The notes below the pieces were generated by a model. It was not told the origin of the DNA. It made no database searches and saw only the letters and a program-made list of their open reading frames with translations. A stretch of 64,000 nucleotides of DNA, taken from assembly GCF_000006765.1 (NCBI RefSeq), contig NC_002516.2. One strand, written 5' to 3'. Positions 22,493 to 47,353 of the stretch are shown piece by piece. Source of the stretch: Pseudomonas aeruginosa PAO1 (GTDB taxonomy: Bacteria; Pseudomonadota; Gammaproteobacteria; Pseudomonadales; Pseudomonadaceae). Position 1 is the stretch's first letter. Each line of letters starts with the position of its first letter. A program made the translations under genes and the position numbers.

Positions 22493-22727
22493 CAGTCCTT
22501 GTTCTTCATTGCTGCAACGGCGGCAGGAAGCCGAGGATGGTAGCACCCGCCCGGAGCGCCCCTCAAGCAAGGTGCGAGCGAGGCGGAGGCCCGGGAAATC
22601 CTGACCCGCCGGTTCATTTGCCCTATACATTTCCCGGTATTTGGAGTATTCGTTAGGGGTATCGAGTCGCCCGCTCGCACTCACCCACCGAGCGCCGGGC
22701 GAGCCCCCCGGAACAGAACGAGTCACT

Positions 22728-23723
22728 ATGTCCGATTCCCGCCTGGTCGATCCCTTCGGCCGTCGCATCACCTACCTGCGCCTGTCGGTGACGGATCGCT
22801 GCGACTTCCGCTGCACCTACTGCATGAGCGAAGACATGCAGTTCCTTCCCCGCGACCAGGTCCTCAGCCTGGAAGAACTGTACGCGGTGGCCGACGCCTT
22901 CATCGGCCTCGGCGTGCGGCGCATTCGTATCACCGGCGGCGAGCCGCTGGTGCGCAAGGGCATCACCGGCCTGCTGGCACGCCTGGGGCAGCGTGCGGAA
23001 CTGGAAGACCTGGCGATCACCACCAACGGTTCGCAACTGCGCGAGCGCGCCGCCGAGCTGAAGGCCGCCGGCGTCCGCCGCCTCAACGTCAGCCTCGACT
23101 CGCTGCAGCGCGAACGCTTCGCCGCCTTCACCCGTAGCGATCGCCTGGAGCAGGTGCTGGACGGCATCCAGGCGGCGCGCGAAGCCGGTTTCGAGCGGAT
23201 CAAGCTGAACTGCGTGGTACAGAAGGGCCGCAACGACGACGAGATCCTCGACCTGGTCGAGTACGCCCTGGCCAACCAGTTGGACATCAGTTTCATCGAG
23301 GAAATGCCGCTGGGCAGCATCACCAGCCACCGTCGCGAACTGACTCTCTGCACCAGCGACGAAGTCCGCGCGATCATCGAGCGCCGCTGGCCGCTGACCC
23401 CGAGCCTGGCGCGCAGCGGCGGGCCGTCGCGGTATTACCAGATCGGCGACGAGCCCAGCCGGATCGGCTTCATCTCACCTCACAGCAATAATTTCTGCGG
23501 CGACTGCAACCGCGTGCGCGTCACCGCCGAGGGCAAGCTGGTGCTCTGCCTCGGCCACGAGGGGGCGCTCGACCTGCGCGAACTGCTGCGCAGTCATCCC
23601 GGCGACCGCGAGCGCCTGAGCGCGGCACTGGTGGCGGCGCTGAACCTGAAGCCGGAGCGGCATCACTTCGACGCCCAGGAGCAGGTCCAGGTGCTGCGTT
23701 TCATGAGCATGACCGGCGGCTGA
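22728..23723 (+). CDS. moaA2: GTP 3',8-cyclase (molybdenum cofactor biosynthesis, radical SAM)
   Basis: YLRLSVTDRCDFRCTYCM, ITGGEPL, FCGDCNRVR and C-terminal MSMTGG. Confidence 0.95.
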   Translation: MSDSRLVDPFGRRITYLRLSVTDRCDFRCTYCMSEDMQFLPRDQVLSLEELYAVADAFIGLGVRRIRITGGEPLVRKGITGLLARLGQRAELEDLAITTNGSQLRERAAELKAAGVRRLNVSLDSLQRERFAAFTRSDRLEQVLDGIQAAREAGFERIKLNCVVQKGRNDDEILDLVEYALANQLDISFIEEMPLGSITSHRRELTLCTSDEVRAIIERRWPLTPSLARSGGPSRYYQIGDEPSRIGFISPHSNNFCGDCNRVRVTAEGKLVLCLGHEGALDLRELLRSHPGDRERLSAALVAALNLKPERHHFDAQEQVQVLRFMSMTGG

Positions 23724-23737
23724 CGGTATCCTCCTGG

Positions 23738-23765
23738 GGCGATGGCACCAACGGCGCCATCCGCC
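23738..23765. repeat. Degenerate REP-like palindrome
   Basis: GGCGATGGCACCAACGGCGCCATCCGCC, related to the copy at 38510. Confidence 0.4.
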
Positions 23766-23907
23766 GCTTCCTCTCCCATGCCACCCGGGCGACCGTGTTC
23801 CGGCACGCACCGCTCGCTGCCCCGTCCCGGGAAAAGCGACGCGGCGCAACGCCGAAACGCGGCGAAGACGTCATGCTGCCTGCCGCGCCAGCAAAGGAAA
23901 GCCTCCC

Positions 23908-24237: not shown

Positions 24238-24267
24238 GTGGTGCGGACCGCGAGCGGAGAAAAAGAA

Positions 24268-24284
24268 GCCGGACGAAGTCCGGC
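24268..24284 (-). terminator. Intrinsic terminator after the NCS2 permease
   Basis: GCCGGAC-N3-GTCCGGC followed on the minus strand by TTCTTTTTCT. Confidence 0.6.
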
Positions 24285-24328
24285 CCGAGGGAAGGGCGGA
24301 CCGGGAGTGTCGCCGGTCCGCCAGGGAG

Positions 24329-25696
24329 TCAGGAGTGCTTGGGCGCCGGCGCGTGGCTGCCGCACAAGTGGCTGCGGTCGTTGCGGCTGAGGATGTTGAA
24401 CAGCAGGTTCAGCACCACCGCCCAGATCGCGGTCATGGCGATGCCGCTATGGGTGATCGGCTCCATCCAGACCGGCAGGCGGGCGAAGAAGTCCGGGCGC
24501 ACCACCGGCACCATGCCCATGCCGATGCTTACCGCCACCAGCAACTGGTTGCGGCGGTCGGTGATGTTGGCCTCGTGGAGGATCTGGATGCCGCTGGCGG
24601 CGACCATGCCGAACATGGCGATGCCGGCGCCGCCGAGTACCGCCGGCGGGATCGAGGCGACCAGGAAGGCGGCCTTGGGCAGCATGCTGAGGAGGATCAG
24701 GAAACCGGCGGCGGCCACCGTGACGTAGCGGCTGCGCACCCCGGTCATCTGCACCAGGCCGATGTTCTGGGCGAACGAGGAATGGGTGAAGGTGTTCAGG
24801 AAACCGGCGAAGAACGAGGCGCCGGCGTCGCAGAGCAGGCCGCGGCGCAGTTCGGTCGGGGTGATCTCGCGGCCGGTGATCTTGCCCAGGGCGAGGAACA
24901 TGCCGGTGGACTCGACGAAGATGATCACTACCACCAGGCACATCGACAGGATTGGCGCCAGGTCGAAGGTCGGCGCACCGAAGTGCAGCGGGGTGACGAT
25001 GTCGAACCAGGGGCGCTCGGCCAGACCGCCGAGGTCGACCATGCCCATGCCGCCGGCGATCGCGTAGCCCAGGCCCATGCCCATCAGCACCGAGATGTTG
25101 ACCCAGAAACCGCGCATGAAGCGGTTGATCAGGAGGATGGTGCAGAGCACCAGGCTGGAGAGGAACAGGAAGTGCAGGGAGCCGAAGTCTTCCGCGCCCT
25201 TGCCGCCGCCGGCCCAGTTGATCGCCACCGGGAACAGGCACATGCCGATCGAGGTGATCACCGTGCCGGTCACCAGCGGTGGGAAGAAACGCACGATGCG
25301 CGACATGAAGGGGGCGATGAGCATGCCGAAGAAACCGGCGGCGATGGTCGCGCCGAAGATCCCGGTGATGCCCACGCCGGGCATCCCGGCCATCGCCACC
25401 ATGCTGCCGACGGCGGCGAAGCTGGCGCCCATCATCACCGGCATGCGGATGCCCATCGGGCCGATGCCCAGCGACTGGACCAGGGTGGCGATGCCGGCGA
25501 CCAGCAGGTCGGCGTTGATCAGGAAGGCGATTTCCTCGCGCGAGAGGCCGGCCGCCTGGCCGACGATCAGAGGCACGGCGACGGCGCCACCGTACATCAG
25601 CAGCACATGCTGGAAGCCCACCAGCAGCAGCTGCGTCAGCGGCAGGCGCTGGTCTACGGGCGAGTCGGGGATGCGGCGATCAGTTACCACGGACAT
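24329..25696 (-). CDS. NCS2/NAT-family xanthine/urate permease
   Basis: GFQHVLLMYGG, GASFA, ESTG and NAT signature FAQNIGLVQMTGV.SR. Confidence 0.92.
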   Translation of the reverse strand: MSVVTDRRIPDSPVDQRLPLTQLLLVGFQHVLLMYGGAVAVPLIVGQAAGLSREEIAFLINADLLVAGIATLVQSLGIGPMGIRMPVMMGASFAAVGSMVAMAGMPGVGITGIFGATIAAGFFGMLIAPFMSRIVRFFPPLVTGTVITSIGMCLFPVAINWAGGGKGAEDFGSLHFLFLSSLVLCTILLINRFMRGFWVNISVLMGMGLGYAIAGGMGMVDLGGLAERPWFDIVTPLHFGAPTFDLAPILSMCLVVVIIFVESTGMFLALGKITGREITPTELRRGLLCDAGASFFAGFLNTFTHSSFAQNIGLVQMTGVRSRYVTVAAAGFLILLSMLPKAAFLVASIPPAVLGGAGIAMFGMVAASGIQILHEANITDRRNQLLVAVSIGMGMVPVVRPDFFARLPVWMEPITHSGIAMTAIWAVVLNLLFNILSRNDRSHLCGSHAPAPKHS

Positions 25697-25819
25697 GCAA
25701 CACCTCAGGCGTTTTTATTGTTGTCAGTCGCAGGCGGACACCGGAAAAGGCAGGTTCCGGCGGCCGGGTATTTCTGGCCGAACATCCACCCCAGGCTTCA
25801 GGGCGATGCGGTGGGGTGT

Positions 25820-25897
25820 TTTATATCCCCGTTGTGTGCTCGATTCAATCGATTTTTTGTATACAAAGTAATTTTTTGTAGTTGACCAATCGGTCTA
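25820..25897 (-). promoter_or_regulatory. Sigma70 promoter of the NCS2 permease with two operator boxes
   Basis: TTGAAT-17-TATAAA (25848-25820); TTGTATACAA at 25857-25866; TTGACCAATCGGTCTA at 25882-25897. Confidence 0.7.
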
Positions 25898-26378
25898 CTA
25901 CAGGCTTTCCAGAGCTGCTTCCACTGTATCCATAGAACTGGCGCCGGCTACCCCCGGGACGCCCGGCGGTGTACGACATTGGTCGGATAGCCGACGTGCT
26001 CTAGCCGCTGGGAGTTTTCAGCGACCCCTACCTCAGTGGGCACAAGCCCGGTGCAGCAAGGCCTTGAACCCTGTCGCCCGGGATCAGCCATGGGTCTTTG
26101 CGGAACGCCTGCTTGCATTGGCGACTACAAGCAGCGACGTGCGCGAGAGCAACCGGCTATCTGAGCGCCAGTAGATCCTGGCGGCAATGGAGACGCTCAA
26201 CGAGCAAAGAGAATGCCGCCAGCGCTTGCTGGAGTGCACAACGGCAGACTGGCCAAGGTGCCAAGGCTCTGGGCAGGTCAGGCTGGACAAGAAGCCGGCG
26301 GAGTTTTCCTGAGCGTTCTACAGGAGAGGCACGAAGGAGGTCGCCGAAGTCTTTCGGCATATCGAACGTCCCCCTTTT

Positions 26379-26639
26379 TCAGTTTTCGGCAGCGCCCAAC
26401 GGGCCACTGGCAATCAGGCTGGCACCACAAGCTGTTTTCATCCCATGTAGCGCGACCGGGACCCCATTCACATCCAGCAGGGCGCTACCTTCGGTAATGG
26501 GGAAGGTTCCCTTGCACAAGGGACAAACCACTTGGTGGCCTACACCGGCCATCGGCTTGCCGTTGAGGTCGGTCTGGCCGAACGCCTCAATCACCGTGCC
26601 TCCATGGCTGGTGGTGTCGCCAAGGCGAATGATGTCCAT
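26379..26639 (-). CDS. PAAR-domain T6SS spike-tip protein
   Basis: IRLGDTTSHGG.V, CPLCKG, VALHG...ACGA.LIAS. Confidence 0.92.
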   Translation of the reverse strand: MDIIRLGDTTSHGGTVIEAFGQTDLNGKPMAGVGHQVVCPLCKGTFPITEGSALLDVNGVPVALHGMKTACGASLIASGPLGAAEN

Positions 26640-26651
26640 CGCGGGTTGCTC

Positions 26652-27794
26652 CTATAGGTCGTCCAGCCAGCTGTCTTTTGGCTTCAGGCTGGAGAGGAAT
26701 TCCTCATAGACATAGTGATCACCGAGCGTTTGGCCGCCAGGCGTAGCGGGTTTCGGAGCAGGGGAAGGACCGGCATTTCCGCCACGTGGCGATGAAGACG
26801 TCGGGCGCACGCGAATCGAATCGACAATGGTGTCCCACAGTTCCAATGCTTCTTTATCCGATTTGAAGGCAGGGGGCGGTGGTTTACCGTTTTCATTGCT
26901 GCGTTCCAGTACCGCCAGTCCCGCAGTAAGATTGGGCTCGGTTAGCGATTCCTCCTTGCCTTGAACCTCCCACATGAAGGTATAGCCGCGCTGCCCCTTA
27001 TCGCTTCCCGCAACCAGATACTCCTCTCCGGGAAGGCTCCCGACAGGATGCTTTCCTTTTCTTAATGTTTCCATACCTGCAAACGTGGAGAGCATGTTTT
27101 GCACGAAGCCGTCGACTCGCTCAAGAAGGCTGTTTAGCTCAGCTCCCGTGGAGGAGCGGAATTCAAAGCGCGCGCCGGGGTGCTCAGGGAAAGTGACTCC
27201 CACTCCAAACCTCTCCACTTGAAAACTATCCCCTGCAATATAAGCGTGGTCGATGCAAAAGCCCGGCTCGCTGGGGATTTCTTTTGGCGCGCGAGAACGT
27301 AGATTTCGAGCTAAAGCCCTAGATATCTCCACAGCATGTTGCTCTCTGTCTACCGAAACTTTCCCTTTCCAACGATAGACATGCCACGTAGGCTTAGATG
27401 TAACATAGGTATCCAATAAATAGGTTTTAGAGGCAACCTCTGAAGACCAAGACAATAAACCTACTGATTCATTGCCAAAGTCAATTTTACGAAGAAACAT
27501 GTTACCTTTGGATTTATGTCTCTGAGTCCTCCACTCTTGTTCAAGACGATCAACCCTGGCTGCCAGTTCGGTAGGTTTATCATCTAAGTACTCAATTCTG
27601 TCTCCCCATAGGTAGTATCCGGCATTGATTACCGCGTCAGGTGGCAGATCAATCAGAAAGCGACCAAAGCAATGAGTAATCCATCCGGTCTTGTCCATGG
27701 AAGAGCTCCGAGAAGAAGAAAACGAAGTGCAACTGGTCATGCTGGTCAAGACCACCACTCCAAGTACAGCAAGCAACCGACGGGGATGCATCAT
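26652..27794 (-). CDS. tli4: T6SS lipase immunity lipoprotein (Tli4/TplEi type)
   Basis: Lipoprotein signal ending ...TSMTSC; CFGRFLIDLP and PGFCID motifs; ATGA overlap with the effector gene. Confidence 0.85.
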   Translation of the reverse strand: MMHPRRLLAVLGVVVLTSMTSCTSFSSSRSSSMDKTGWITHCFGRFLIDLPPDAVINAGYYLWGDRIEYLDDKPTELAARVDRLEQEWRTQRHKSKGNMFLRKIDFGNESVGLLSWSSEVASKTYLLDTYVTSKPTWHVYRWKGKVSVDREQHAVEISRALARNLRSRAPKEIPSEPGFCIDHAYIAGDSFQVERFGVGVTFPEHPGARFEFRSSTGAELNSLLERVDGFVQNMLSTFAGMETLRKGKHPVGSLPGEEYLVAGSDKGQRGYTFMWEVQGKEESLTEPNLTAGLAVLERSNENGKPPPPAFKSDKEALELWDTIVDSIRVRPTSSSPRGGNAGPSPAPKPATPGGQTLGDHYVYEEFLSSLKPKDSWLDDL

Positions 27795-29500
27795 GTCCCT
27801 CCTTTGTCATTAGGATGCCAATCCGCCAACTGGGTGATTTTGATCACCCCATATAGCGCTGCCCATTGAGCACGAGCATCGTTGTAACTCTCCTGGTGCT
27901 CATAGCCCCGTTTGGTATTGGCCTGTCCCTTGCCCTTGCTGCCATGCCGAAAGCTGGCCTTGACGCCCGCCAGGGCAGGCGCCTGGCCGGAGTCGGTCGG
28001 TACCGTTTCGTCACCTCCGCTACCGGAAGCGTCCAGAGGATTTCCCGTCTCCAGCGGACCCTGCACTATGGTGGGCAAGCCCCGGCGGAACCAACTGTTG
28101 TAAGTGCCGTTCTCATCGTCGTTGAGTGTGGCACCGGGGGTCTCCAGAGGGGTAGGGTCACCCTTCCAGATCAGGTCGCGCCAACTATGGCGGCTATCGT
28201 CAGCTCCGTAATGGGCATAGGTCTCTGAGTGATATCCTGCTGCTGATAATTCACCATGAAAATTAGCAATGCTATCTATCAAGTCTTCAAAGTTATCACG
28301 GGGGCCAACTCTTAAACCTTCTTTTTTGTCTGACATGTCCAGATATTGTGAATTTTGCTCAGGCACCAATCCATACCACGTAGTGTTCTTGTATATCTCT
28401 TCATAAGGGTCCTGATTCTGCGGATAAGCCCGAGGCTTTCCATCGATATCCTTGAGCACCTGCCCCTGCGCGTCGCATAGAAACAGCCAGGGACGCCCTT
28501 CCCGGTATTCCGCGCTAGGGGCCAATTCCAGCGCGCCGGCCGAATTGGCGACAATGGCTGTCACTTCACCGGCATTTCGCCCCAGCACGACCTGTGCGAT
28601 ACCTTCATAGCCACAGCGCATATGATGGTAGATGGTCGAGGAACCTGTCGCAGGTTGTACGCCATGCACCACCCCCAATACGCGCTCATAGCCGTGCAAC
28701 TGCGTCAGGGCGCGAGCCACCAGCCCTCCCATCGAATGGGTGACCAGAATGACCTTCATACGTCTCATCTGCTCGGGATCGAGACCGCACTCCTTTTGGT
28801 AGAAAGGCAACACGGTATTCTCGATATAGTCGCGTACATCCAGCGCCGACTGCCGGTTGGACTGTAGCCAGTTATAGCCGGCGCACCAGACATCGAACTG
28901 GTATCGGCTGGCCCTGAGCAATTCCTCTTCATCGATCGGCCCAACCTTTCCCTGCTCCTCACCCTGATCTCCAGGAGGAGAGAGGGCTTCGTCATTCCAC
29001 CATGCCTGGAGTTCCCGCCGGCTGACGATGTTATCCAGTCGCCTCTCCATTAATCCCATGACCGGGTTATACGCACTGCGCATGACCTTGCCCCAGCCGC
29101 GCAGGCGGGCAGCTTCTTCGGACAAACCAGATTGACCGACATCGATCGTACCCTGGTCATCGACTTCTACTTGCTCAGCCTTCAGGAGCTCCTGACGGGC
29201 CTTTGGACCCCTCCAGGCCCAAGTCCACAACGCACCGATGGAGGCAAACAGGTCATCCATGGGCCACAGACCATTCGGCGGCCTCCAGACCTCGCTTTTA
29301 TCTGCCTTGTTGCGCAGGTTGGTTCCCATGATCCCCGGAATGAAGATCACCGGCAGGGGAGCGGTCTGCCGAATCAGTGCCACCTTTTCGCTCTGGTTGT
29401 CGGTACGGGTCAACTGCGCCTTGTAGACAGGCCGTCCCAGACTGTCGCGAGAGCGAGGGATGATCACATCCTGATTCGGCTCGAGCGGTTCGCTGCTCAT
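27791..29500 (-). CDS. tle4: T6SS phospholipase effector of the Tle4 (PGAP1-like alpha/beta hydrolase) family
   Basis: PVIFIPGIMGT, GYNWLQS, nucleophile elbow LVTHSMGGL, terminal YEHQ; coupled to vgrG. Confidence 0.88.
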   Translation of the reverse strand: MSSEPLEPNQDVIIPRSRDSLGRPVYKAQLTRTDNQSEKVALIRQTAPLPVIFIPGIMGTNLRNKADKSEVWRPPNGLWPMDDLFASIGALWTWAWRGPKARQELLKAEQVEVDDQGTIDVGQSGLSEEAARLRGWGKVMRSAYNPVMGLMERRLDNIVSRRELQAWWNDEALSPPGDQGEEQGKVGPIDEEELLRASRYQFDVWCAGYNWLQSNRQSALDVRDYIENTVLPFYQKECGLDPEQMRRMKVILVTHSMGGLVARALTQLHGYERVLGVVHGVQPATGSSTIYHHMRCGYEGIAQVVLGRNAGEVTAIVANSAGALELAPSAEYREGRPWLFLCDAQGQVLKDIDGKPRAYPQNQDPYEEIYKNTTWYGLVPEQNSQYLDMSDKKEGLRVGPRDNFEDLIDSIANFHGELSAAGYHSETYAHYGADDSRHSWRDLIWKGDPTPLETPGATLNDDENGTYNSWFRRGLPTIVQGPLETGNPLDASGSGGDETVPTDSGQAPALAGVKASFRHGSKGKGQANTKRGYEHQESYNDARAQWAALYGVIKITQLADWHPNDKGGT

Positions 29501-32025: not shown

Positions 32026-32206
32026 GGATCGTTCCTTGTTCCTGGCGGGCGGTTCCTCCCCCATCCGTTGGAGAAGCGAGCCCCACGTTACTCTTGCTCA
32101 GCCGCTGCCGAAAGTCTTGGCTCGGTGTCTATTTCGCGAAGTAGCGGACATTTTCGGCTCGACGGAGAACCGGCCGCACAGGTGTACGACCGGTGTGCCT
32201 GTCAAC

Positions 32207-32725
32207 TCACCCTGCCACCGGCGAGCGCCAGTCGTCGGAGCCGGAGGTGCCGGAGACTTCGTGGGTCCAGGTGATCTTGCGGTAGGTGAAGTGCACGTCT
32301 TCCAGGTGGGTGAAGTGGGCGTTGCCCGGGTCCTGGCAGTTGTGCATGTAGTCCTTGATGTCGACGATGATCGCGTCTTCCAGGACGGTGGTGTAGTAGT
32401 GCTCCTGGGTGCCGGCGGCGGAGGTGCGGTACCACTGGATCTCGACCTTGGTCAGGCGCTCGCCGGAGGTCAGGGCGGCCAGCAGCAGCGGCGAGGCCTT
32501 GTCGAAGACCTTGGTGATGACCACCGGCTTGTGCACGCGCTGGCCGGTCGGCTGGCCGGACTGCGGGTCGCGCGGGATGATCACTTCGTGGTTGAAGCCC
32601 TGGACCATCACCTGGTCCTCGTGGCCTTCCTGGTAGGTGTTGCCGACCGAATCCTCGGTGAAGGCGCCGGCGGTGATCAGGCCCTGCTTGGTGCCGGTGA
32701 TGGACATATAGGCGGGGGTTGCCAT
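32207..32725 (-). CDS. hcpA: Hcp tube protein (H2-T6SS type)
   Basis: MATPAYMSITGTKQG, SGQPTGQRVHKP, FTYRKITW. Confidence 0.95.
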   Translation of the reverse strand: MATPAYMSITGTKQGLITAGAFTEDSVGNTYQEGHEDQVMVQGFNHEVIIPRDPQSGQPTGQRVHKPVVITKVFDKASPLLLAALTSGERLTKVEIQWYRTSAAGTQEHYYTTVLEDAIIVDIKDYMHNCQDPGNAHFTHLEDVHFTYRKITWTHEVSGTSGSDDWRSPVAG

Positions 32726-37620: not shown

Positions 37621-37812
37621 TTGTATACAAGTTTGCCTGCGGTCTGTAAATACAATCCTGCTTGCCGATCCCTGCCATTCATCCAGCAAAAAACCTGCCC
37701 GACTGGTCAGTTAGCGAAGAATGAGGCCCTGCGGGGTGGGGCTTGTGGAAGGAATGCCCGATTTCGGGGCGGCTGCCGCATTTTCGGTTGTGGCGGTGTT
37801 TTTTGTATACAA
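37621..37812. promoter_or_regulatory. Divergent puuE / uraH promoter region with operator boxes
   Basis: Perfect TTGTATACAA at 37621 and 37803; partial RutR-type box CTGCCCGACTGGTCAG at 37695-37710. Confidence 0.65.
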
Positions 37813-37954: not shown

Positions 37955-38308
37955 ATGGGACGTTTGACCACGCATGTACTGGATTCCGCACATGGCTGCC
38001 CCGGCCATGGCATCAAGATCGAGCTGTACCGGGTGGAAGGCCAGCAACTGGAACTGATCGCCACCACCCTGACCAACCACGACGGCCGCTGCGACCAGCC
38101 GGTGCTGCAAGGCGAGGACTTCCGTCCCGGGGTCTATCAACTGGTGTTCAACGCCGGCGACTACTATCGCGCCCGCGGCGTGCAATTGCCGGAGCCGGCC
38201 TTCCTCGACCAGGTGGTGCTGCGTTTCGGCATCGCCTCCGCCGACGATCACTACCACGTGCCGCTGCTGATCTCGCCCTACAGCTATTCGACCTATCGCG
38301 GCAGCTAG
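37955..38308 (+). CDS. uraH: 5-hydroxyisourate hydrolase (transthyretin-like)
   Basis: MGRLTTHVLD, TN.DGR, HYHVPLL.SPYSYSTYRGS; alternative in-frame GTG start at 37928. Confidence 0.93.
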   Translation: MGRLTTHVLDSAHGCPGHGIKIELYRVEGQQLELIATTLTNHDGRCDQPVLQGEDFRPGVYQLVFNAGDYYRARGVQLPEPAFLDQVVLRFGIASADDHYHVPLLISPYSYSTYRGS

Positions 38309-38537: not shown

Positions 38538-38548
38538 ATCCGGGCGGG

Positions 38549-39898
38549 TCAGAGGAAGATGAACTTGGCGACGAAGATCACGAACAACGCATAGAGGCTG
38601 GCCGAGACTTCGCGGTGCTTGCCGGTGAGGACCTTCATCGCGACGTAGGTGATGAAGCCCAAGGCGATACCGTCGGCCACCGAGAAGGTCAGCGGCATCA
38701 TGATCACCGTGACGATCGCCGGGATGGTCTCGGTGTGCTCGTCCCAGTCGATGTGCGCCATCCCGCCCATCATCAGCATGGCCACGTAGATCAGCGCGCC
38801 GGCGGTGGCGAAGGCGGGGATCATCCCGGCCAGCGGGGCGAAGAACATCGCGGCGACGAACAGCACGCCGACCACCACCGCGGTGAGCCCGGTACGTCCG
38901 CCGGCGGCCACGCCCGCGGCGCTCTCCACGTAACTGGTCACCGGCGGGACACCGAGCATGCCGCCGAACACGCTGGAGGCGCTGTCGGCCTTCATCGCCT
39001 TCGACAGGTTCTCGATACGTCCGTCCTCCTTCACCAGGTGCGCGCGCTGGGCGACGCCCATGAGAGTGCCGGCGGTATCGAACATGTGCACGAAGAGGAA
39101 GGCCAGGATCACGCTGATCATGGTGACGTTGAACGCGCCGGCGATGTCCATCGCCAGGAAGGTCGGCGCCAGGCTCGGCGGCGCCGAGAACACCCCGCCG
39201 TACTGCACCAGGCCGAGGGCCCAGCCGACCAGGGTGACGCTGAGGATGCTGATGAGGATGCCGCCGAACACCCGGCGGTACTCGAGCACGGCGATCATCA
39301 GGAAGCACAGTGCCGCCAGCAGCGGGCCGGGCGAGGTGAGGTGGCCGAGCTTGATCAGGGTCGCCGGGCTGGCCACCACGATGCCGGCGGTCTTCAGGCC
39401 GATCAGGCCGAGGAACAGGCCGACTCCCGCACCCATGGCGAACCTGAGGCTGCGGGGGATGCTGTTGAGCAGCCATTCGCGGACCCGGGAGAAGGTCAGC
39501 AGCATGAACATCACCCCGGAGATGAACACCGCGCCTAGGGCGATCTGCCAGCTGTAGCCCATGGTGCCGACCACGGTGTAGGTGAAGAAGGCGTTCAGTC
39601 CCATTCCCGGCGCCAGGCCCACCGGCCAGTTGGCGTACAGGCCCATCAGGAAGCAGCCGAGGGCGGCCGCCAGGCACGTGGCGACGAACGCCGCGCCGTG
39701 GTCGATGCCGGCGTCGGCCATGATGTTGGGATTGACGAAGATGATGTAGGCCATGGTGATGAAGGTGGTCAGCCCGGCCGCCAGCTCGGTCCTGACCGTC
39801 GTACCATGCTGGCGGAGCTTGAACAGGCGTTCGAGCAGGCCGGTGGCGGGCGGTGTCGCAGCGTAGATCCCTTGTTCTTCTTGTTTGGTGCTTTCCAC
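38549..39898 (-). CDS. NCS2 AzgA/PbuG-family guanine/hypoxanthine permease
   Basis: GLTTFITMAYII.VNP, APGMGLNAFF, FDT.GT, YVESAAGVAAGGRTG. Confidence 0.92.
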   Translation of the reverse strand: MESTKQEEQGIYAATPPATGLLERLFKLRQHGTTVRTELAAGLTTFITMAYIIFVNPNIMADAGIDHGAAFVATCLAAALGCFLMGLYANWPVGLAPGMGLNAFFTYTVVGTMGYSWQIALGAVFISGVMFMLLTFSRVREWLLNSIPRSLRFAMGAGVGLFLGLIGLKTAGIVVASPATLIKLGHLTSPGPLLAALCFLMIAVLEYRRVFGGILISILSVTLVGWALGLVQYGGVFSAPPSLAPTFLAMDIAGAFNVTMISVILAFLFVHMFDTAGTLMGVAQRAHLVKEDGRIENLSKAMKADSASSVFGGMLGVPPVTSYVESAAGVAAGGRTGLTAVVVGVLFVAAMFFAPLAGMIPAFATAGALIYVAMLMMGGMAHIDWDEHTETIPAIVTVIMMPLTFSVADGIALGFITYVAMKVLTGKHREVSASLYALFVIFVAKFIFL

Positions 39899-39995
39899 AG
39901 CAGGTACTCCTCATCGCTCTTGTTGTTAGGTCCTGCGGGCCGGTTGGTTACCAGGTCCCTGACGCGGCTCGAAGGTGATGTGAGGGCACGATTTT

Positions 39996-40054
39996 CTGAC
40001 CTCTGGGTCAAGAACTCGTGCGAGCGATTATGCCTTTGTATACAAAAAGGTCAA
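39996..40054 (-). promoter_or_regulatory. Sigma70 promoter of the AzgA-type permease overlapped by two operator types
   Basis: TTGACC-16-CATAAT (40054-40027) with TTGTATACAA (40036-40045) in the spacer; CTGACCTCTGGGTCAA at 39996-40011. Confidence 0.7.
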
Positions 40055-40272: not shown

Positions 40273-41052
40273 ATGACCGATCAGTTGCAACACATCAGGA
40301 AGCCGCCGCGCACCGGCAAGGCTGCCCGCAGCGGTACCCAGGACGAGATCGTCTACGCCCACATCTTCGACGCCATCCTCGAACAACGCCTGGCCCCCGG
40401 CACCAAGCTGAGCGAGGAGGCGCTCGGCGAGATATTCGGTGTCAGCCGCACCATCATTCGCCGCGCCCTCTCGCGCCTGGCCCACGAGCAGGTGGTGCTG
40501 TTACGGCCGAACCGCGGCGCGGTGGTCGCCAGCCCGAGCATCGACGAGGCCCGGCAGATCCTTTTCGCCCGCCGCACAGTCGAGCGCGCCATCACCGAAC
40601 TGGCCACCGACAACGCCACCGCCGAGCGTCTGGCCGAGTTGCGCGAGATGGTGGTGCAGGAACAATCCAGCTTCGCCCGTGGCGACCGGGGCGCCGGCAT
40701 CCGCCTGTCCGGCGAGTTCCACCTGAAGCTCGCCGAGATGGCGCGCAACGCTCCTCTGGTGAGTTTCCAGCGCAGCCTGGTGTCGCAGACCTCGCTGATC
40801 ATCGCCCAGTACGAAAGCGGCGGTCGCTCGCACTGCTCGTTCGACGAGCACAACGAGATCCTCGACGCCATCGAGAAGGGCGACAAGGAGCGCGCGGTGA
40901 CCCTGATGATGCACCACATGGAGCATATCGACAGCAAGCTCAACCTGGAGAGCGACAACGCTTCCGGCGACCTGCACGCGGTGTTCTCGCACCTCCTCGG
41001 CGGCAAGAAGAAGCCACGCCGGGCCAAGGCCGACAGCGACTCGGCGGCCTGA
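40273..41052 (+). CDS. GntR-family regulator with FCD domain
   Basis: L.PGTKLSEE.L.E.FGVSRT.IR.AL..L HTH; FH..LA...N and EH..IL.A. Confidence 0.92.
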   Translation: MTDQLQHIRKPPRTGKAARSGTQDEIVYAHIFDAILEQRLAPGTKLSEEALGEIFGVSRTIIRRALSRLAHEQVVLLRPNRGAVVASPSIDEARQILFARRTVERAITELATDNATAERLAELREMVVQEQSSFARGDRGAGIRLSGEFHLKLAEMARNAPLVSFQRSLVSQTSLIIAQYESGGRSHCSFDEHNEILDAIEKGDKERAVTLMMHHMEHIDSKLNLESDNASGDLHAVFSHLLGGKKKPRRAKADSDSAA

Positions 41053-41063
41053 TCCGAAGCATG

Positions 41064-41090: not shown

Positions 41091-41105
41091 CGTTTCCGCC
41101 GGGAG

Positions 41106-42410
41106 TCAGTCGCGGCGATGCACCGAGCGACCGGCGGCGAAGGTTTCCTTCACCGTGCGGTCGTCGCCGAGGATGGTCAGCGCGAACAGCCGTTCGGCCA
41201 GGCTGCCGGCCTGGCTCAGGCGGTAGGAGAGCAGCGGGGTGGCGTGGTAGTCGAGGACCACGAAGTCCGCCTCGTTGCTGGTGGCGAAGCTGCCGATCCG
41301 GTCGTCCAGCTCCAGCGCACGGGCGCCGCCGAGGGTGGCGAGGTAGAGCGACTTGAACGGATCGAGGCGGGCGCCCTGCAACTGCATGACCTTGTACGCC
41401 TCGTTCAGGGACTGCAGCTGGGAGAAGCTGGTGCCGGCGCCGACATCGGTGCCGAGGCCGACCTTGACCTTGTAGCGCTCCAGCTTCGGCAGGTCGAACA
41501 GACCGCTGCCGAGGAACAGGTTGGAGGTCGGGCAGAACGCCACCGCCGAGCCAGTCTCCGCCAGGCGCTGGCATTCGCCGTCGCACAGGTGCACGCCATG
41601 GGCGAACACCGAGCGCGGCCCGAGCAGGCCGTGGTGGTCGTAGACGTCCAGGTAGCCGCTGCGCTCGGGGAACAGCTCCTTCACCCACTCGATTTCCTTG
41701 AGGTTCTCCGACAGATGGGTGTGCAGGTATACGCCGGGATGCTCGCGCAGCAGCCGCGCCGCCATGTCCAGCTGTTCCGCGGTGCTGGTCGGGGCGAAGC
41801 GCGGGGTCACCGCGTAGAGCAGACGGCCCTGGCCGTGCCAGCGCTCGATCAGCGCCTTGCTGTCGCGGTAGCTGCTCTCGGCGGTGTCGGTCAGGTAGTC
41901 CGGCGCGTTGCGGTCCATCATCACCTTGCCGGCGATCAGGCGCAGGTCCAGGCGCCGGGCGGCCTCGAACAGCGATTCCACCGATTGCCGGTGCACGCTG
42001 CCGAAGACCAGGGCGGTGGTGGTGCCGTTGCGCAGCAGTTCCTGCAGGAAGATCTCGGCGACCTGGTCGGCATGGGCCTGGTCGCCGAATTGGCGCTCGG
42101 TGGGGAAGGTATAGGTGTTCAGCCAGTCCAGCAGTTGTTCGCCGTAGGAGGCGATCATCCCGGTCTGCGGGAAATGGATGTGGGTATCGATGAAGCCGGG
42201 GGTGATCAGCGCGTCGCGGTACTCGAAGACCTCGACCTCGCCGATCTCGCCGAGCAGGGTTTCGGCGTCACCGAGGCGAGCGACCTTGCCGTCCTCCACC
42301 AGCAACAGGCCGTCCTCGAAGTATTCGTAGGAGCGTTCGACGCCGACCTCCGCGGGGTCGGCGATGCTGTGCAGGATGGCGGCGCGGTAGGCTTTGGCGT
42401 TGCGGGTCAT
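41106..42410 (-). CDS. guaD: Guanine deaminase
   Basis: PGFIDTHIHFPQ, VTPRFAP, HTHLSEN, AHGVHL, GLGTDVGAG. Confidence 0.94.
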   Translation of the reverse strand: MTRNAKAYRAAILHSIADPAEVGVERSYEYFEDGLLLVEDGKVARLGDAETLLGEIGEVEVFEYRDALITPGFIDTHIHFPQTGMIASYGEQLLDWLNTYTFPTERQFGDQAHADQVAEIFLQELLRNGTTTALVFGSVHRQSVESLFEAARRLDLRLIAGKVMMDRNAPDYLTDTAESSYRDSKALIERWHGQGRLLYAVTPRFAPTSTAEQLDMAARLLREHPGVYLHTHLSENLKEIEWVKELFPERSGYLDVYDHHGLLGPRSVFAHGVHLCDGECQRLAETGSAVAFCPTSNLFLGSGLFDLPKLERYKVKVGLGTDVGAGTSFSQLQSLNEAYKVMQLQGARLDPFKSLYLATLGGARALELDDRIGSFATSNEADFVVLDYHATPLLSYRLSQAGSLAERLFALTILGDDRTVKETFAAGRSVHRRD

Positions 42411-42479
42411 GGCAGTCTCGAAAAAAGGTTCGTGGGAGGTCCGCCGCCTGGCGGCGGACGCGGGGGAGCGGGGGGCCGC

Positions 42480-43319
42480 TCAGGATTCGTGGGCGCGGCG
42501 CGACTCCGGGGTCAGCCGGGTGACGCTCGACGGCCCCTGCTTGCGTTCCAGGCCGAAGGCGGCGTTGTAGGTGGCGATCACCTCGCCGGCGATGGAGATG
42601 GCGATCTCCGCCGGCAGCTTGCCTTTCACCTGCTCCAGGCCCATCGGGCAGCGCATCCGTTGCAGGCGTTCGGCGTCGACGCCACGTTCGCGCAGGCGGT
42701 GCTCGAACTTGACGCGCTTGGTCTTCGAGCCGATCAGGCCGAAGTAGGCGAAGTCGTTGCGCGCCAGGATCGCCGCGGTAAGCTCCAGGTCCAGCGGGTG
42801 ATTGTGGGTCATGACGATGAAGTGGCTGCCGGGCGGCATCCGCTCGACCTCGTCGAGCACTTCGTCGTTCACCACTTTCTCCACGCCGTCGGGCAGGAGC
42901 GCGGGAAATTCGTGTTCCCGCGAATCGATCCAGCGCACCCGGCAGGGCAGGCTGGCGAGCAAGGGTACCAGGGCGCGACCGACGTGGCCCGCGCCGAACA
43001 CGGCGATGTGTGCCTGCGGCTGGCCCATCGGCTCGAACAGCAGCACCGTGGCGCCGCCGCAGCACTGGCCGAGACTGGCGCCCAGGCTGAAGCGCTCCAG
43101 GCGGGTGTCCTGGGTCCGCGCGGCGAGCATTTCCCGGGCAATGGCCTGGGCCCTGTATTCCAGGTGGCCGCCGCCGATGGTGTCGTAGAGCCGCTCGGCG
43201 CTGACCACCATCTTCGAGCCGGCGTTGCGCGGGGTCGAGCCGCGTTCCTCGATGATGGTCACCAGGACGCAAGGTTCGCCGCTACGCTGCAACTCGGCCA
43301 GGGCGCTGATCCAGTTCAT
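42480..43319 (-). CDS. xdhC: Xanthine dehydrogenase accessory protein
   Basis: Start reset to MNWISAL; GSTPR.AGSKM, TIGGG.LE, GQCCGG, MTHNH.LD, GLIGSKTK. Confidence 0.93.
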   Translation of the reverse strand: MNWISALAELQRSGEPCVLVTIIEERGSTPRNAGSKMVVSAERLYDTIGGGHLEYRAQAIAREMLAARTQDTRLERFSLGASLGQCCGGATVLLFEPMGQPQAHIAVFGAGHVGRALVPLLASLPCRVRWIDSREHEFPALLPDGVEKVVNDEVLDEVERMPPGSHFIVMTHNHPLDLELTAAILARNDFAYFGLIGSKTKRVKFEHRLRERGVDAERLQRMRCPMGLEQVKGKLPAEIAISIAGEVIATYNAAFGLERKQGPSSVTRLTPESRRAHES

Positions 43320-43345
43320 CTCGTCATCCTCCCGATCGCGGCGGT

Positions 43346-45745
43346 TCAGGCCGGTTCGACCGCGGCGTCCGCCGCTTGCGCCTGGGCGGCCTTCAGCCGG
43401 CGCATCTGTTCCACGCCCCAGAGCACCCGCTCGGGCGTCGCCGGCGCGTCGATGGCGGGTTGCGCGCGGTAGTCGGCGAGGCTGGCCACGGCGTCCTTGA
43501 TCGCGCACCAGACCGAGATGCCGAGCATGAACGGCGGCTCGCCCACGGCCTTGGAATGGAACACGGTCTGCTCCGGATTCTTGCGGTTCTCCAGCAGTTT
43601 CACCCGCAGGTCCAGCGGCATGTCGGCGACGGCGGGAATCTTGTAGCTGGCCGGGCCGCTGGTCATCAGCTTGCCCTTGGCGTTCCAGACCAGTTCCTCC
43701 ATGGTCAGCCAGCCCATGCCCTGGACGAAGCCGCCTTCGACCTGGCCGATGTCGATGGCCGGGTTCAGCGAGTCGCCGACGTCATGCAGGATGTCGGTGC
43801 GCAGCATGCGGTATTCGCCGGTGAGGGTATCGACTATCACCTCCGAGCAGGCGGCGCCGTAGGCGAAATAATAGAAGGGCCGGCCACGGGCCTGCTCGCG
43901 GTCGTAGAAGATCTTCGGCGTGCGGTAGAAGCCGGTGCTGGACAACGAGACCTGGCCGAAGTAGGCCTGCTGGATCAGTTCCTCGAACGGCAGGATCAGC
44001 TCGCGGATACGCACCTGGTTGTTGCGGAACTCGATGTCTTCCTCGCTGACCTTCCAGTGCCGCGCGGCGAACTCCACCAGGCGCCGCTTGATGGTTTCGG
44101 CGGCATTCTGCGCGGCCTTGCCGTTCAGGTCGGTGCCCGAGGAGGCGGCGGTGGGCGAGGTATTGGGCACCTTGTCGGTATTGGTGGCGGTGATCTGGAT
44201 GCGCTCCACGTCGACCTGGAAGACCTCGGCGACCACCTGGGCGACCTTGGTATTGAGGCCCTGGCCCATCTCGGTGCCGCCATGGTTCAGGTGGATGCTG
44301 CCGTCGGTATAGATGTGGATCAGCGCACCTGCCTGGTTGAGGAAGGTCGCGGTGAACGAAATGCCGAACTTCACCGGGGTCAGCGCCAGGCCTTTCTTCA
44401 GGACCGGGCTGGCGGCATTGAAGGCACGGATTTCCTCGCGGCGGCGGGCGTACTCGCTGCTCGCTTCCAGCTCGGCGGTCATCTCCGCCAACAGGTTGTG
44501 CTCGACGGTCTGGTGGTAATGGGTGACGTTGCGCTCGTCCTTGCCGTAGTAGTTGAGCTTGCGCACCTCCAGCGGATCCTTGCCCAGGCTGCGGGCCACG
44601 GCGTCCATGATCTCCTCGATGGCGACCATTCCCTGGGGCCCGCCGAAACCGCGGTAGGCGGTGTTCGAGGCGGTGTTGGTCTTGCAACGGTGGCCGTTGA
44701 TGGTGGCGTTGCCGAGGAAGTAGGCGTTGTCCGAGTGGAACATGGCGCGGTCGACGATCGAGCCGGAGAGGTCCGGCGAATAGCCGCAGTTGCCGGCCAG
44801 GTCGATCTGGATGCCGTGCAGGCGGCCATCGTCGTCGAAGCCGACGTCGTATTCGACGTAGAACGGGTGACGCTTGCCGGTGATCTGCATGTCCTCCATG
44901 CGCGGTAGGCGCATCTTCGCCGGACGCCCGGTGTGGTAGGCGACCACCGCGCACAGGCAGGCCGGCGCCGCGGCCTGGGTTTCCTTGCCGCCGAAGCCGC
45001 CGCCCATGCGGCGCATGTCGATGACGATGCGGTTGAAGGAAACCCCGAGGACCTCGGCCACCAGCTTCTGCACTTCGGTGGGGTTCTGGGTCGAGCAATA
45101 GACGATCATGCCGCCGTCTTCGCTGGGCATTACCGAGGAAATCTGCGTCTCCAGGTAGAAATGCTCCTGGCCGCCGATGTGCAGCGTGCCTTGCAGGCGA
45201 TGCGGCGCGCCGGCCAGCGCGGCGGCGGAGTCGCCGATGCGGTGCTGGTGGCTGTCGAGGACGAAATGGCGCTTGCGCAGGGCCTCGACCACGTCGAGCA
45301 CCGGTTCCAGGTCTTCGTACTCGACGATCGCCGCCATGGCCGCCTTGCGCGCGGTTTCCAGGCTGTCGGCGGCGACCGCCAGGACCATCTGTCCGACATA
45401 CTCCACCTTGCCATCGGCCAGCAGTGGGTCGCCGGCCACCACCGGGCCGATGTCGAGCTGGCCGGGAACGTCGGCGGCGGTGAGGGCGATGGCGACGCCG
45501 GGGAACTGGTAGCAGGGCGTCACGTCGAGGCGGGTGATGCGGGCGTGGGCGCGCTCGCTCAGGCGCGCATAGACGTGCAACTGGTTGGGAAACTCCAGGC
45601 GATCGTCGATGTAGATCGCCTCGCCGCTGACGTGCTTGGGGGCGCTTTCGTGCTTGACGCTGCGGCCGACTCCGGTGGTCAACTCGGCGCGGAACAGGTC
45701 GGCCAGCTCTTCCTGGCTCTTGTGCGGCTTGCGATGGTTAGACAT
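43346..45745 (-). CDS. xdhB: Xanthine dehydrogenase molybdopterin-binding subunit
   Basis: GGQEHFYLE, RMGGGFGGKE, AYRGFGGPQG, GQVEGGF.QG, SKAVGEPP. Confidence 0.96.
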   Translation of the reverse strand: MSNHRKPHKSQEELADLFRAELTTGVGRSVKHESAPKHVSGEAIYIDDRLEFPNQLHVYARLSERAHARITRLDVTPCYQFPGVAIALTAADVPGQLDIGPVVAGDPLLADGKVEYVGQMVLAVAADSLETARKAAMAAIVEYEDLEPVLDVVEALRKRHFVLDSHQHRIGDSAAALAGAPHRLQGTLHIGGQEHFYLETQISSVMPSEDGGMIVYCSTQNPTEVQKLVAEVLGVSFNRIVIDMRRMGGGFGGKETQAAAPACLCAVVAYHTGRPAKMRLPRMEDMQITGKRHPFYVEYDVGFDDDGRLHGIQIDLAGNCGYSPDLSGSIVDRAMFHSDNAYFLGNATINGHRCKTNTASNTAYRGFGGPQGMVAIEEIMDAVARSLGKDPLEVRKLNYYGKDERNVTHYHQTVEHNLLAEMTAELEASSEYARRREEIRAFNAASPVLKKGLALTPVKFGISFTATFLNQAGALIHIYTDGSIHLNHGGTEMGQGLNTKVAQVVAEVFQVDVERIQITATNTDKVPNTSPTAASSGTDLNGKAAQNAAETIKRRLVEFAARHWKVSEEDIEFRNNQVRIRELILPFEELIQQAYFGQVSLSSTGFYRTPKIFYDREQARGRPFYYFAYGAACSEVIVDTLTGEYRMLRTDILHDVGDSLNPAIDIGQVEGGFVQGMGWLTMEELVWNAKGKLMTSGPASYKIPAVADMPLDLRVKLLENRKNPEQTVFHSKAVGEPPFMLGISVWCAIKDAVASLADYRAQPAIDAPATPERVLWGVEQMRRLKAAQAQAADAAVEPA

Positions 45746-47192
45746 AGGCGGTCACCCGGGTTTCGACGGCGGGAGCGTGCAGCTCCAGGAAGCATTTGCG
45801 CAGCAGGTTCTGCGCGGTCAGCAGGCGATATTCCTTGCTCGCGCGGAAGTCGCTGAGCGGGGTGAAGTCGTTCGCCAGGGCGGCCGCGGCGCGTTCGAAG
45901 CTGGCGGCTTCCAGGCGCGCGCCTTGCAGCGCCGCTTCGCAGGCGGCGGCGCGCTTGGGAATCGCCGCCATGCCGCCGAAGGCGACCCTGGCGCGGGCGA
46001 TCCGGCCATCTTCCAGGTCGAGGCTGATGGCGGCGCAGACCGCGGAAATATCGTCGTCGATGCGCTTGGAGACCTTGTAGGCCTTGAACGCCTGGCTGGG
46101 CCGGGCACGCGGGACCAGGATCTTCTCGATGAACTCGCCTTCTTCGCGGGCGGTGACCTTGTAGTCGAGGAAGTACTCCTCCAGCGGCAGCTCGCGGCGC
46201 CGTTCGCCGCGGCGCAGGACGATCTTCGCGCCGAGGGCGATCAGCAGCGGCGGGGCGTCGCCGATCGGCGAGGCGTTGCCGATATTGCCGCCGAGAGTGC
46301 CCTGGTTGCGGATCTGCAGGGACGCGAAACGCTGCAGCAACTCGCCGAAGTCCGGGTAGTCCGCGGCCAGCGCCTGGTAGCAGTCGGTCAGCGGGGTGGC
46401 GGCGCCGATTTCCAGGCAGTTGGCGCCCACTTCGATGCGTTTCATTTCGCGGATGTGGCCGACATAGATCATCACCGGCAGTTCGCGATGGAACTGGGTG
46501 ACCTCCAGCGCCAGGTCGGTGCCGCCGGCCAGCAGGCGTGCCTGCGGATTGGCGCCGTAGAGGTCGGCCAGGTCGGCGACGGTGAGCGGCAGCAGGCAGC
46601 GCCGGTCACCGCTGTTCAGCTCGGCGGTTTCGCGCGGAGCGATGGCGCGCAATTGCTCGATGGTGGCGGCTTCCCGGGCGTCGAACTGGTCTGCGCGCTT
46701 GTGGCAGCAGGCCTGCTCGGCGGCGTCGAGGATCGGCCGGTAGCCGGTGCAGCGGCAGAGGTTGCCGGCGAGCGCCTCGTGGGCCTTGGCCGGATCGGCG
46801 CCGGCGCTGTTCTTCTGCAGGGCGAACAGCGACATGACGAAACCCGGCGTGCAGAACCCGCACTGCGAGCCATGGCAGTCGACCATCGCCTGCTGCACGT
46901 CGTGCAGGCGGTCCTGGTGCTTGAGGTCCTCGACGGTGATCAATTGCTTGCCGTGAAGGGCGGAAACGAAGGTCAGGCAGGAGTTCAGGCTGCGATAGCG
47001 GATGCGTTCGGCACCATCCTCGCCGGTGACCAGTTCGCCGACCACCACGGTGCAGGCGCCGCAATCGCCGGAGGCGCAGCCTTCCTTGGTGCCGGTCTTG
47101 CCGAGGTGCCGGCGCAGGTAGTCGAGGACGGTGAGGTTGGGGTCCAGGCGTTCTTCGACGCGGATCTCCCGGTTGAGCAGGAACCTGATCAA
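45738..47192 (-). CDS. xdhA: Xanthine dehydrogenase 2Fe-2S/FAD subunit
   Basis: KEGCASGDCGACT, SQCGFCTPG, NLCRCTGY, AGGTDL, TLGGNIGNASP. Confidence 0.96.
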   Translation of the reverse strand: MIRFLLNREIRVEERLDPNLTVLDYLRRHLGKTGTKEGCASGDCGACTVVVGELVTGEDGAERIRYRSLNSCLTFVSALHGKQLITVEDLKHQDRLHDVQQAMVDCHGSQCGFCTPGFVMSLFALQKNSAGADPAKAHEALAGNLCRCTGYRPILDAAEQACCHKRADQFDAREAATIEQLRAIAPRETAELNSGDRRCLLPLTVADLADLYGANPQARLLAGGTDLALEVTQFHRELPVMIYVGHIREMKRIEVGANCLEIGAATPLTDCYQALAADYPDFGELLQRFASLQIRNQGTLGGNIGNASPIGDAPPLLIALGAKIVLRRGERRRELPLEEYFLDYKVTAREEGEFIEKILVPRARPSQAFKAYKVSKRIDDDISAVCAAISLDLEDGRIARARVAFGGMAAIPKRAAACEAALQGARLEAASFERAAAALANDFTPLSDFRASKEYRLLTAQNLLRKCFLELHAPAVETRVTAYV

Positions 47193-47300
47193 GGCGTGCC
47201 TCCAGGCGGGTTCTTGTTATTGAATTCTAGGCCTTGCAGGAGAACCGGCCGGAGTGGGGCGGTTTCCGCACAGGGCTCCACGGTAGGAGCTATGGAGGCG

Positions 47301-47353
47301 AATCTAGAAAAAACTGACTTTTGAGTCAAATAATTTTTTGACCTGTAGGTCAG
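47301..47353 (-). promoter_or_regulatory. xdhA promoter with tandem RutR-type palindromes
   Basis: TTGACT-17-TAGATT (47329-47301); CTGACTTTTGAGTCAA at 47314 and TTGACCTGTAGGTCAG at 47338. Confidence 0.7.

Follow-up and report, generated by a model that had tools for sequence, protein, structure and literature searches.

Background

The described systems that come closest to the one treated here are the following regulators. In Escherichia coli the uracil sensor RutR, a regulator of carAB, of pyrimidine use and of some genes for purine degradation, recognises a 16-bp palindrome whose half-site is TTGACC (PMC2952853), and its autoregulatory site lies downstream of a start (PMC4325133). PydR, the repressor of the reductive pyrimidine pathway in Pseudomonas putida, belongs to the same subfamily, and XdhR of Streptomyces coelicolor and Agrobacterium fabrum is a dedicated repressor of xdhABC, released by a small molecule; it answers to ppGpp, GTP and c-di-GMP, and not to hypoxanthine (PMC6627660). 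Here we analyse a stretch of 64,000 nt from Pseudomonas aeruginosa PAO1 (NC_002516.2; "the window" in what follows), in which palindromes of the form YTGACY-N4-RGTCAR accompany genes of purine catabolism and in which a RutR-like regulator of the TetR family, PA1504, is encoded. Gene names are those given by family scans. The region corresponds to PA1502-PA1525, the purine-catabolism supercluster of P. aeruginosa, since the first 18 bases of the TetR gene are those of the PA1504 cloning primer (PMC13086498) and the gene layout fits the one described in PMC12694930.

PA1504 resembles RutR in combining a TetR_N with a YcdC-like domain, and its candidate sites resemble those of RutR in being 16-bp palindromes with the half-site TTGACC that can lie downstream of a start. 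It differs in that there are no rut genes nearby, its neighbours and candidate targets being purine-catabolism, permease and molybdenum-cofactor genes, and in that the candidate boxes are arranged in tandem at xdhA, whereas RutR binds as a single dimer. PydR comes from the same bacterial family as PA1504, but it keeps L74, W77 and W167 of RutR and has Lys at position 78 (PMC4325133). XdhR is encoded beside xdhABC, whereas PA1504 is encoded about 24 kb from xdhA. The partner of PA1504 in the cluster is UgmR (PA1520), which, in the account that PMC12694930 gives by citing Xu et al. (2022), is a repressor responsive to urate, with binding in front of gcl and PA1513-PA1518; it differs from PA1504 in belonging to the GntR family, in its box, TTGTATACAA, and in its published binding, and copies of this box occur along with the palindromes at the PA1519 and PA1507 promoters. 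As for the arrangement at xdhA, QacR, a repressor of the TetR family, likewise has two adjacent binding units at a promoter; its two dimers occupy one 28-bp site (PMC2952853), whereas here there are two separate palindromes 22-24 bp apart. Parkhill et al. (2025; PMC12694930) described PA1504 as uncharacterised and as absent from the set used for systematic evolution of ligands by exponential enrichment; our literature searches on PA1504, on RutR with xdhA and on TetR regulators with purine catabolism found no characterisation.

Results

Palindromes in the window

A first-pass annotation of the window had quoted six strings as copies of a RutR-like operator, TGACY-N4-RGTCA. All six are present in the sequence, as follows.

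25882..25897, TTGACCAATCGGTCTA, one mismatch to the motif
39996..40011, CTGACCTCTGGGTCAA, exact motif
47314..47329, CTGACTTTTGAGTCAA (minus-strand reading TTGACTCAAAAGTCAG), exact motif
47338..47353, TTGACCTGTAGGTCAG, exact motif
37695..37710, CTGCCCGACTGGTCAG (minus-strand reading CTGACCAGTCGGGCAG), three mismatches
22601..22616, CTGACCCGCCGGTTCA, three mismatches, in the divergent region between tetR (PA1504) and moaA2

The exact motif occurs three times in the 64 kb (at 39997, 47315 and 47339) against 0.16 occurrences expected, and none of 100 shuffled sequences reaches three. Matches with three mismatches, taken as 16-mers, are frequent in the window (42 against 17.8 expected), so that the copies at 37695 and 22601, considered alone, are not above chance. 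A weight matrix trained on the family-wide xdhA sites gave as its top five matches in the window five of the sites listed above, at 29.0, 24.5, 20.7, 10.4 and 7.3 bits, and placed the one at 22601 ninth, with 1.5 bits.

Genome-wide counts were taken from the nearest genome, G001 (6.3 Mb), standing in for PAO1 itself. This genome holds 16 exact copies of the motif versus 28 of a reversed control motif, which amounts to no enrichment. Three of the 16 sit within 7.4 kb of the purine cluster, and the 15 copies that were inspected, twelve of them outside the cluster, are all intergenic. Some of those outside adjoin unrelated genes, among them pntA, exaC together with a sigma-54 activator gene, fabV, icd/idh, a crotonase gene and a phosphonate LysR gene; the outside copies may be operators of other TetR-type regulators.

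Tandem boxes at the xdhA promoter

The two adjoining exact copies lie upstream of xdhA, the first gene of a likely operon (41106..47192), assigned as such because its genes overlap or are separated by short gaps.

45738-47192, minus strand, xdhA
43346-45745, minus strand, xdhB
42480-about 43350, minus strand, xdhC
41106-42410, minus strand, guaD
47301..47329, minus strand, predicted sigma-70 promoter of xdhABC-guaD (TTGACT at 47329-47324, 17 nt, TAGATT), from a promoter scan and kept in the genus alignment

The scan places the hexamer TTGACT inside the copy at 47314, in agreement with the earlier proposal that this copy lies over the xdhA -35. This proximal box takes in the whole -35 hexamer and reaches 10 nt into the spacer, and the distal box starts 9 bp upstream of the -35, 24 bp centre-to-centre from the proximal one. 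Contigs assembled from RNA libraries (one sample) end at 47291/47292, that is, 9-10 nt past the -10, an agreement to be read with the reservation that contigs cannot prove a start. A search of the window for UgmR boxes found none upstream of xdhA.

Phylogenetic footprinting in 30 species of the genus, which had been suggested as a check, bore out the family at its two main sites: the arms of the proximal xdhA box and of the palindrome upstream of PA1519 are invariant in all 30, with a variable centre. At xdhA this centre is CAAA, TGAA, TAAA, CTAA or CGAA, and the flanks diverge. The distal xdhA box is exact outside the genus; within it, most species other than P. aeruginosa have the imperfect form CTGACC-N4-GRACAG.

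The wider sample comprised 91 genomes from 21 genera of the Pseudomonadaceae, where proteins with at least 72% identity were taken as orthologues of PA1504; in what follows g1 is the genus of P. aeruginosa, and g4, g10, g11, g14, g17, g18 and g20 are other genera of the family. The xdhA gene was found in 48 of the genomes and a PA1504 orthologue in 30, all of which have xdhA. Paired boxes stand upstream of xdhA in every one of these 30: the 23 from outside the genus, which represent six genera, have two exact boxes 22-24 bp apart, and the seven genus members have, in most cases, one exact and one imperfect box, so that the upstream partner box, at a distance of 22-24 bp, is retained in seven genera. 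No paired boxes were found in the 17 examined genomes that bear xdhA without the orthologue; in eleven of them, from four genera, no box appeared at up to one mismatch. Two genomes that lack xdhA within otherwise xdhA-bearing genera also lack the orthologue. In g1, g11, g17 and part of g14 the TetR gene and xdhA share a contig, at a distance of 19-30 kb, and in most genera PA1503-gcl and moaA adjoin the TetR gene. Cluster maps of one g11 and one g17 genome show the tandem xdhA boxes as well as a TetR box beside a UgmR box at the PA1519 orthologue. To judge from this conservation, the palindromes YTGACY-N4-RGTCAR are a genuine, old and deeply conserved operator family.

Besides xdhA itself, most non-aeruginosa species of the genus have another gene like it (about 57% identical), with a RutR-like paralogue of 43-45% identity encoded about 8 kb away, which hints at another such partnership between a RutR-type regulator and a molybdenum hydroxylase.

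Permease promoters

The remaining exact copy and the copy with one mismatch are located at the two permease genes of the cluster, together with UgmR boxes.

38549..39898, minus strand, PA1519, nucleobase permease (Xan_ur_permease)
40027..40054, minus strand, predicted PA1519 promoter (TTGACC, 16 nt, CATAAT), from promoter scan and alignment
40273..41052, plus strand, UgmR (PA1520), GntR regulator
24329..25696, minus strand, PA1507, xanthine permease of pbuX type
25848-25820, minus strand, PA1507 promoter (TTGAAT, 17 nt, TATAAA), conserved
25857..25866, UgmR-type box at PA1507, 8 nt upstream of the -35

At PA1519 the palindrome covers about +9 to +24 relative to the predicted start, and the UgmR box (40036-40045) falls within the promoter spacer. 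Promoter and UgmR box are conserved along with the palindrome across the 30 species, and the palindrome is also found in g11 and g17. An operator over the core promoter or the start, as a TetR repressor would have it, is thus present at the predicted promoters of both xdhA (-35 and spacer) and PA1519. Reporters of xdhB and PA1519 are near-silent and strongly induced by extracellular DNA (bioRxiv 10.1101/850446), as expected for repressed, purine-inducible genes. That the effect of the boxes is repression is otherwise inferred from the position of the sites.

The PA1519 leader (39899-40020, minus strand; roughly 100 nt) is near-invariant in the 30 species and contains a CCCTCA able to pair with the GAGGAG ribosome-binding site; other genera keep just these two elements. 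It has no Rfam match at E <=1, and a permissive Rfam scan of 18000-49000 gave nothing at any of these promoters, for which reason a riboswitch as a third input was rejected. The sole match of that scan, SorX-like (24261-24328, minus strand; 29.1 bits against a gathering threshold of 46.6), lies just downstream of PA1507 and resembles a terminator, with its GC-rich hairpin and U-run.

At PA1507 the midpoint of the box at 25882 falls about 76 bp upstream of the probable start. The closest species alone share this box, the remaining species of the genus having a GTGACC half-site that abuts the UgmR box, and its role as an operator is moderately supported. In g11 and g17 the PA1507 orthologue directly follows the urate-oxidase operon without a promoter of its own, so the promoter and box of PA1507 are a lineage-specific feature. 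The box is embedded in a 26-bp near-palindrome, TGTAGT ... ACTACA (25876-25901), and about 40 bp further upstream there is, in all species of the genus, a second element, GTAGYC-N14-GGNTACAG (25922-25949).

Regions of puuE/uraH, tetR-moaA2 and gcl

Six UgmR boxes with at most one mismatch are found in the window (20704, 20861, 25857, 37621, 37803 and 40036) against 0.17 expected, and they stand upstream of gcl, puuE/uraH and the permeases, where a UgmR regulon would have them. The earlier idea of two regulators with different boxes sharing the cluster holds. The further regions at which the two might meet involve the following features.

18902-20677, minus strand, gcl
20739..20754, remnant half-site (TTGACC) upstream of gcl, minus-strand reading TTGACCTTGCGCTCCC
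22728..23723, plus strand, moaA2, molybdenum-cofactor synthesis, divergent from PA1504
37955-38308, plus strand, uraH, divergent from puuE

In the divergent region between puuE and uraH the two core promoters each have a UgmR box (37621, 37803), and the box at 37695 is over 70 bp distant from either; a TGACC-N4-GGRCAG copy is found there in 8 of the 30 genus species. Between tetR and moaA2 a box with one mismatch, CGACY-N4-RAGTCA, recurs at the same point in 27 of the 30 species; the P. aeruginosa box has decayed further. From this comparison the copies at 37695 and 22601 appear as decayed ones, better preserved in relatives. A UgmR-type box (TGTATACA or TGTACACA) also lies between the TetR gene and moaA, near the moaA start, in g1, g4, g11 and g17, the P. 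aeruginosa copy (22617-22630) being degenerate; moaA2, or even PA1504, may thus come under UgmR as well, and part of the circuit would then be a cascade.

Upstream of gcl, the full boxes in P. aeruginosa are all of the UgmR type, and the palindrome is reduced to a half-site. The genomes of g4 and five of the six of g11 have two UgmR boxes at gcl with a strong palindrome between them, at -83 to -86, and the P. aeruginosa half-site occupies the position of that strong full box. Most species of the P. aeruginosa genus have an imperfect palindrome at -172.

PA1504 and its paralogues

PA1504 is encoded on the minus strand, from 21842 to 22492.

21842..22492, minus strand, PA1504, RutR-like TetR regulator

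Family scans confirm the protein as RutR-like, as had been noted from the sequence: it scores 184.5 bits with TIGR03613, 60.6 bits with TetR_N (PF00440) and 212.1 bits with the YcdC-like C-terminal domain (PF08362), matches E. coli RutR structures at E = 1e-42, and aligns with E. coli RutR end to end without gaps. It stays below the RutR equivalog cut-offs (184.5 versus 368 bits for TIGR03613, 166.4 versus 230 for NF011584). The RutR residues that hold uracil, L74, W77, L78 and W167, correspond to V63, L66, L67 and W156, so that W77 and L74 are replaced, and the change of W77 to Leu would leave a larger cavity in the pocket, a reading that is suggestive only. RutR Leu55, which contacts a base, is a Tyr in PA1504, and this residue differs in all four RutR-like proteins of G001 (Y, L, H, H). 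Because the score is under the family cut-off and Trp77 of the uracil pocket is Leu, PA1504 is, by these marks, RutR-like and not RutR.

The four RutR-like genes of G001 score 150-195 bits on TIGR03613, and none passes the cut-off. Besides PA1504 there is one beside a pbuX permease gene, one beside codA, with the pocket signature of PydR (L, W, K, W), and one beside modABC, with the pocket V, L, L, W as in PA1504. No strong box was found upstream of any of these three. The closest paralogue (53% identical) lies directly upstream of the molybdate transport genes modA-modB (G001:C1:3484830-3488405); this gene and PA1504, which is beside moaA2, are both linked to the supply of molybdenum cofactor for xanthine dehydrogenase. 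Paralogues of 53-64% identity are confined to the P. aeruginosa genus and hence cannot account for the boxes of the six further genera.

Other features of the cluster

The remaining features of the cluster, named by family scans, are these.

Between gcl and the TetR gene, an HbpS-like gene
Between PA1507 and the urate-oxidase operon, a type VI secretion island of low guanine-plus-cytosine (GC) content, with a Tli4-like immunity gene, a lipase-like gene, vgrG and hcp
Downstream of this island in window order, all on the minus strand, genes for a PuuD-type urate oxidase, allA, alc, uraD and puuE
Beyond xdhA, a gene for an AlkB-like hydroxylase

The island at 26000-32725 has a GC content of 55-58%, versus about 66%, and its lipase-like gene is of the PGAP1 type.

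Discussion

We consider, with good support from comparative genomics, that the palindromes are probably operators of PA1504, the RutR-like repressor encoded in the same supercluster. PA1504 is the best candidate because of the strict phyletic match between its orthologues and the paired xdhA boxes, its linkage to xdhA, the distribution of its paralogues and the RutR half-site in the boxes. Several observations weigh against this assignment. The genomes compared are related and not independent, so that the phyletic match amounts to roughly seven versus five genera and not to 30 versus 17. Six of the 17 genomes without the orthologue, all of them from g18, have upstream of xdhA, at about 60 bp, a single box whose centre differs, TTGACCTATCGGTCAG; as no orthologue was found there with this query, another protein can use such an xdhA site, and a different RutR-like protein may have taken over in that genus. 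The most conserved neighbours of PA1504 are PA1503, gcl and moaA2, and not xdh; and the box in its own upstream region is decayed in P. aeruginosa and, in other genera, missing from 19 of 20 loci with an orthologue. G001 holds three further RutR-like genes, of which one adjoins a xanthine permease gene. Finally, the one genome-wide data set in print for PA1504, from chromatin immunoprecipitation sequencing (PMC13086498), gives, as far as its motif and Gene Ontology terms go, a different, non-palindromic motif, SCAGGAHGVCCAGGA, and an enrichment of ribosomal genes. A universal autoregulatory box of PA1504, sought in the other genera, was not found beyond the genus.

Four other explanations were weighed, two of which assign the boxes to a different protein. 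It is improbable that the binder is another RutR-like paralogue, be it the one beside the pbuX-type permease, the PydR-like one beside codA or the one beside modABC. The presence of four RutR-like genes in G001, the location of one paralogue gene directly downstream of a xanthine permease gene, and the g18 xdhA box, which occurs where a 45%-identical paralogue alone is present, speak for such a paralogue, but those of 42-46% identity also occur in genomes whose xdhA has no box (e.g. g10 and g20), that of 53-64% is restricted to one genus, the residue at RutR Leu55 differs in every paralogue, and none has a strong box upstream. A similarly slight chance is given to an unrelated factor whose distribution happens to coincide with that of PA1504, which would then regulate its neighbours gcl, PA1503 and moaA2, for example in response to allantoin. 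This would suit the linkage of the TetR gene across genera, which is tightest with PA1503-gcl and moaA2, and the allantoin induction of gcl, which is unexplained and for which Parkhill et al. (PMC12694930) proposed PA1504; the twelve other exact copies between unrelated genes of G001 also indicate that the pattern is not specific to one regulon. The half-site is nevertheless that of the homologous RutR, the box at gcl in g4 and g11, adjoining the regulator gene, ties the box to the neighbourhood of the regulator, and the mere half-site left at gcl in P. aeruginosa makes PA1504 a poor candidate for allantoin control there.

The other two explanations concern the signal and the reality of the boxes. 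That PA1504 does bind them, but answers a nucleotide signal or a late product of the pathway, in which case the circuit would not fall into substrate-induced and intermediate-induced halves, is the reading to which we give a real, if minor, chance: XdhR responds to ppGpp and c-di-GMP and not to hypoxanthine (PMC6627660), and the gcl box of g4 and g11 shows that the regulon can extend to the final pathway steps. Against it, the characterised members of the RutR subfamily bind a free base, and the pocket of PA1504, with W167 and L78 kept and W77 replaced by Leu, points, suggestively only, to a larger cavity. That the palindromes are chance or compositional strings, -35-like TTGAC runs with no dedicated regulator, is hardly credible. 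TTGACY does resemble the -35 consensus and the exact pattern is less frequent genome-wide than its reversed control, but in seven genera both arms are kept around a centre that varies, the paired boxes stand at a fixed distance of 22-24 bp, one copy lies downstream of its promoter, and the paired xdhA boxes are absent where the orthologue is absent.

If PA1504 is the binder, two of its dimers on the tandem xdhA boxes, one over the -35 and spacer and one upstream, would block RNA polymerase at the xdhABC-guaD promoter, and a single dimer just downstream of the PA1519 start would act as a roadblock to promoter escape. A signal from the purine pathway would release the protein; a purine base, for instance xanthine or hypoxanthine, is the likeliest one and the simplest guess given the RutR subfamily and the enlarged pocket. 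UgmR would control gcl, puuE, uraH and the permeases, so that in P. aeruginosa xdh would be under PA1504 alone, gcl under UgmR alone, PA1519 under both and PA1507 probably under both.

This scheme retains a good part of the two-input circuit that the first-pass annotation had outlined, and modifies the rest. Control of xdh and of uptake by the local TetR protein is favoured by the phyletic match and by linkage to the PA1504 gene, the identity of the binder being deduced from these. That this protein senses nucleobases as RutR does is a less secure part of the outline, the Trp of the uracil pocket being replaced. The division into an upper pathway under the palindromes and a lower one under UgmR agrees with the boxes of P. 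aeruginosa, where xdh has the palindrome alone and gcl the UgmR boxes alone, and fails for g4 and g11, with their strong palindrome at gcl. Convergence on the two permeases is well founded for PA1519, where both boxes are conserved, and weaker for PA1507, where the palindrome has a mismatch, lies about 76 bp upstream and does not keep its position beyond the aeruginosa clade. For puuE/uraH it is weak, since UgmR boxes occur at both promoters but the palindrome is more than 70 bp away and is seen in 8 of 30 species.

Taking the protein, the boxes and their distribution together, we tentatively propose, as a possibility somewhat short of an even chance, that PA1504 represents a purine-sensing branch of RutR, marked by the change of Trp77 to Leu and by Tyr at the base contact. 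Its regulon would consist of xdhABC-guaD and a purine permease in at least seven genera of the Pseudomonadaceae, with gcl and moaA2 as lineage-specific additions, and would have been rewired in P. aeruginosa, where the boxes at gcl and tetR-moaA2 have decayed and a perfect second xdhA box and the PA1507 box have been gained. Together with UgmR it would possibly form a cascade and not a pair of parallel inputs.

Two local repressors that split a catabolic pathway between them are an ordinary design; what is added here is a TetR regulator of the RutR subfamily with a predicted purine regulon. PA1504, a regulator of an opportunistic pathogen that was named as an open question in the 2025 paper on the gcl cluster, gains a candidate operator and a candidate core regulon, xdhABC-guaD and PA1519, and the assignment would explain why xdh has no UgmR box. 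As the gcl box has decayed in P. aeruginosa, the allantoin switch that is missing for gcl in this species is probably some regulator other than PA1504, which could still act at gcl in other genera of the family. Purine breakdown feeds the nitrogen supply and growth on DNA-rich material such as the biofilm matrix, and knowledge of both switches would help in the reading of infection transcriptomes.

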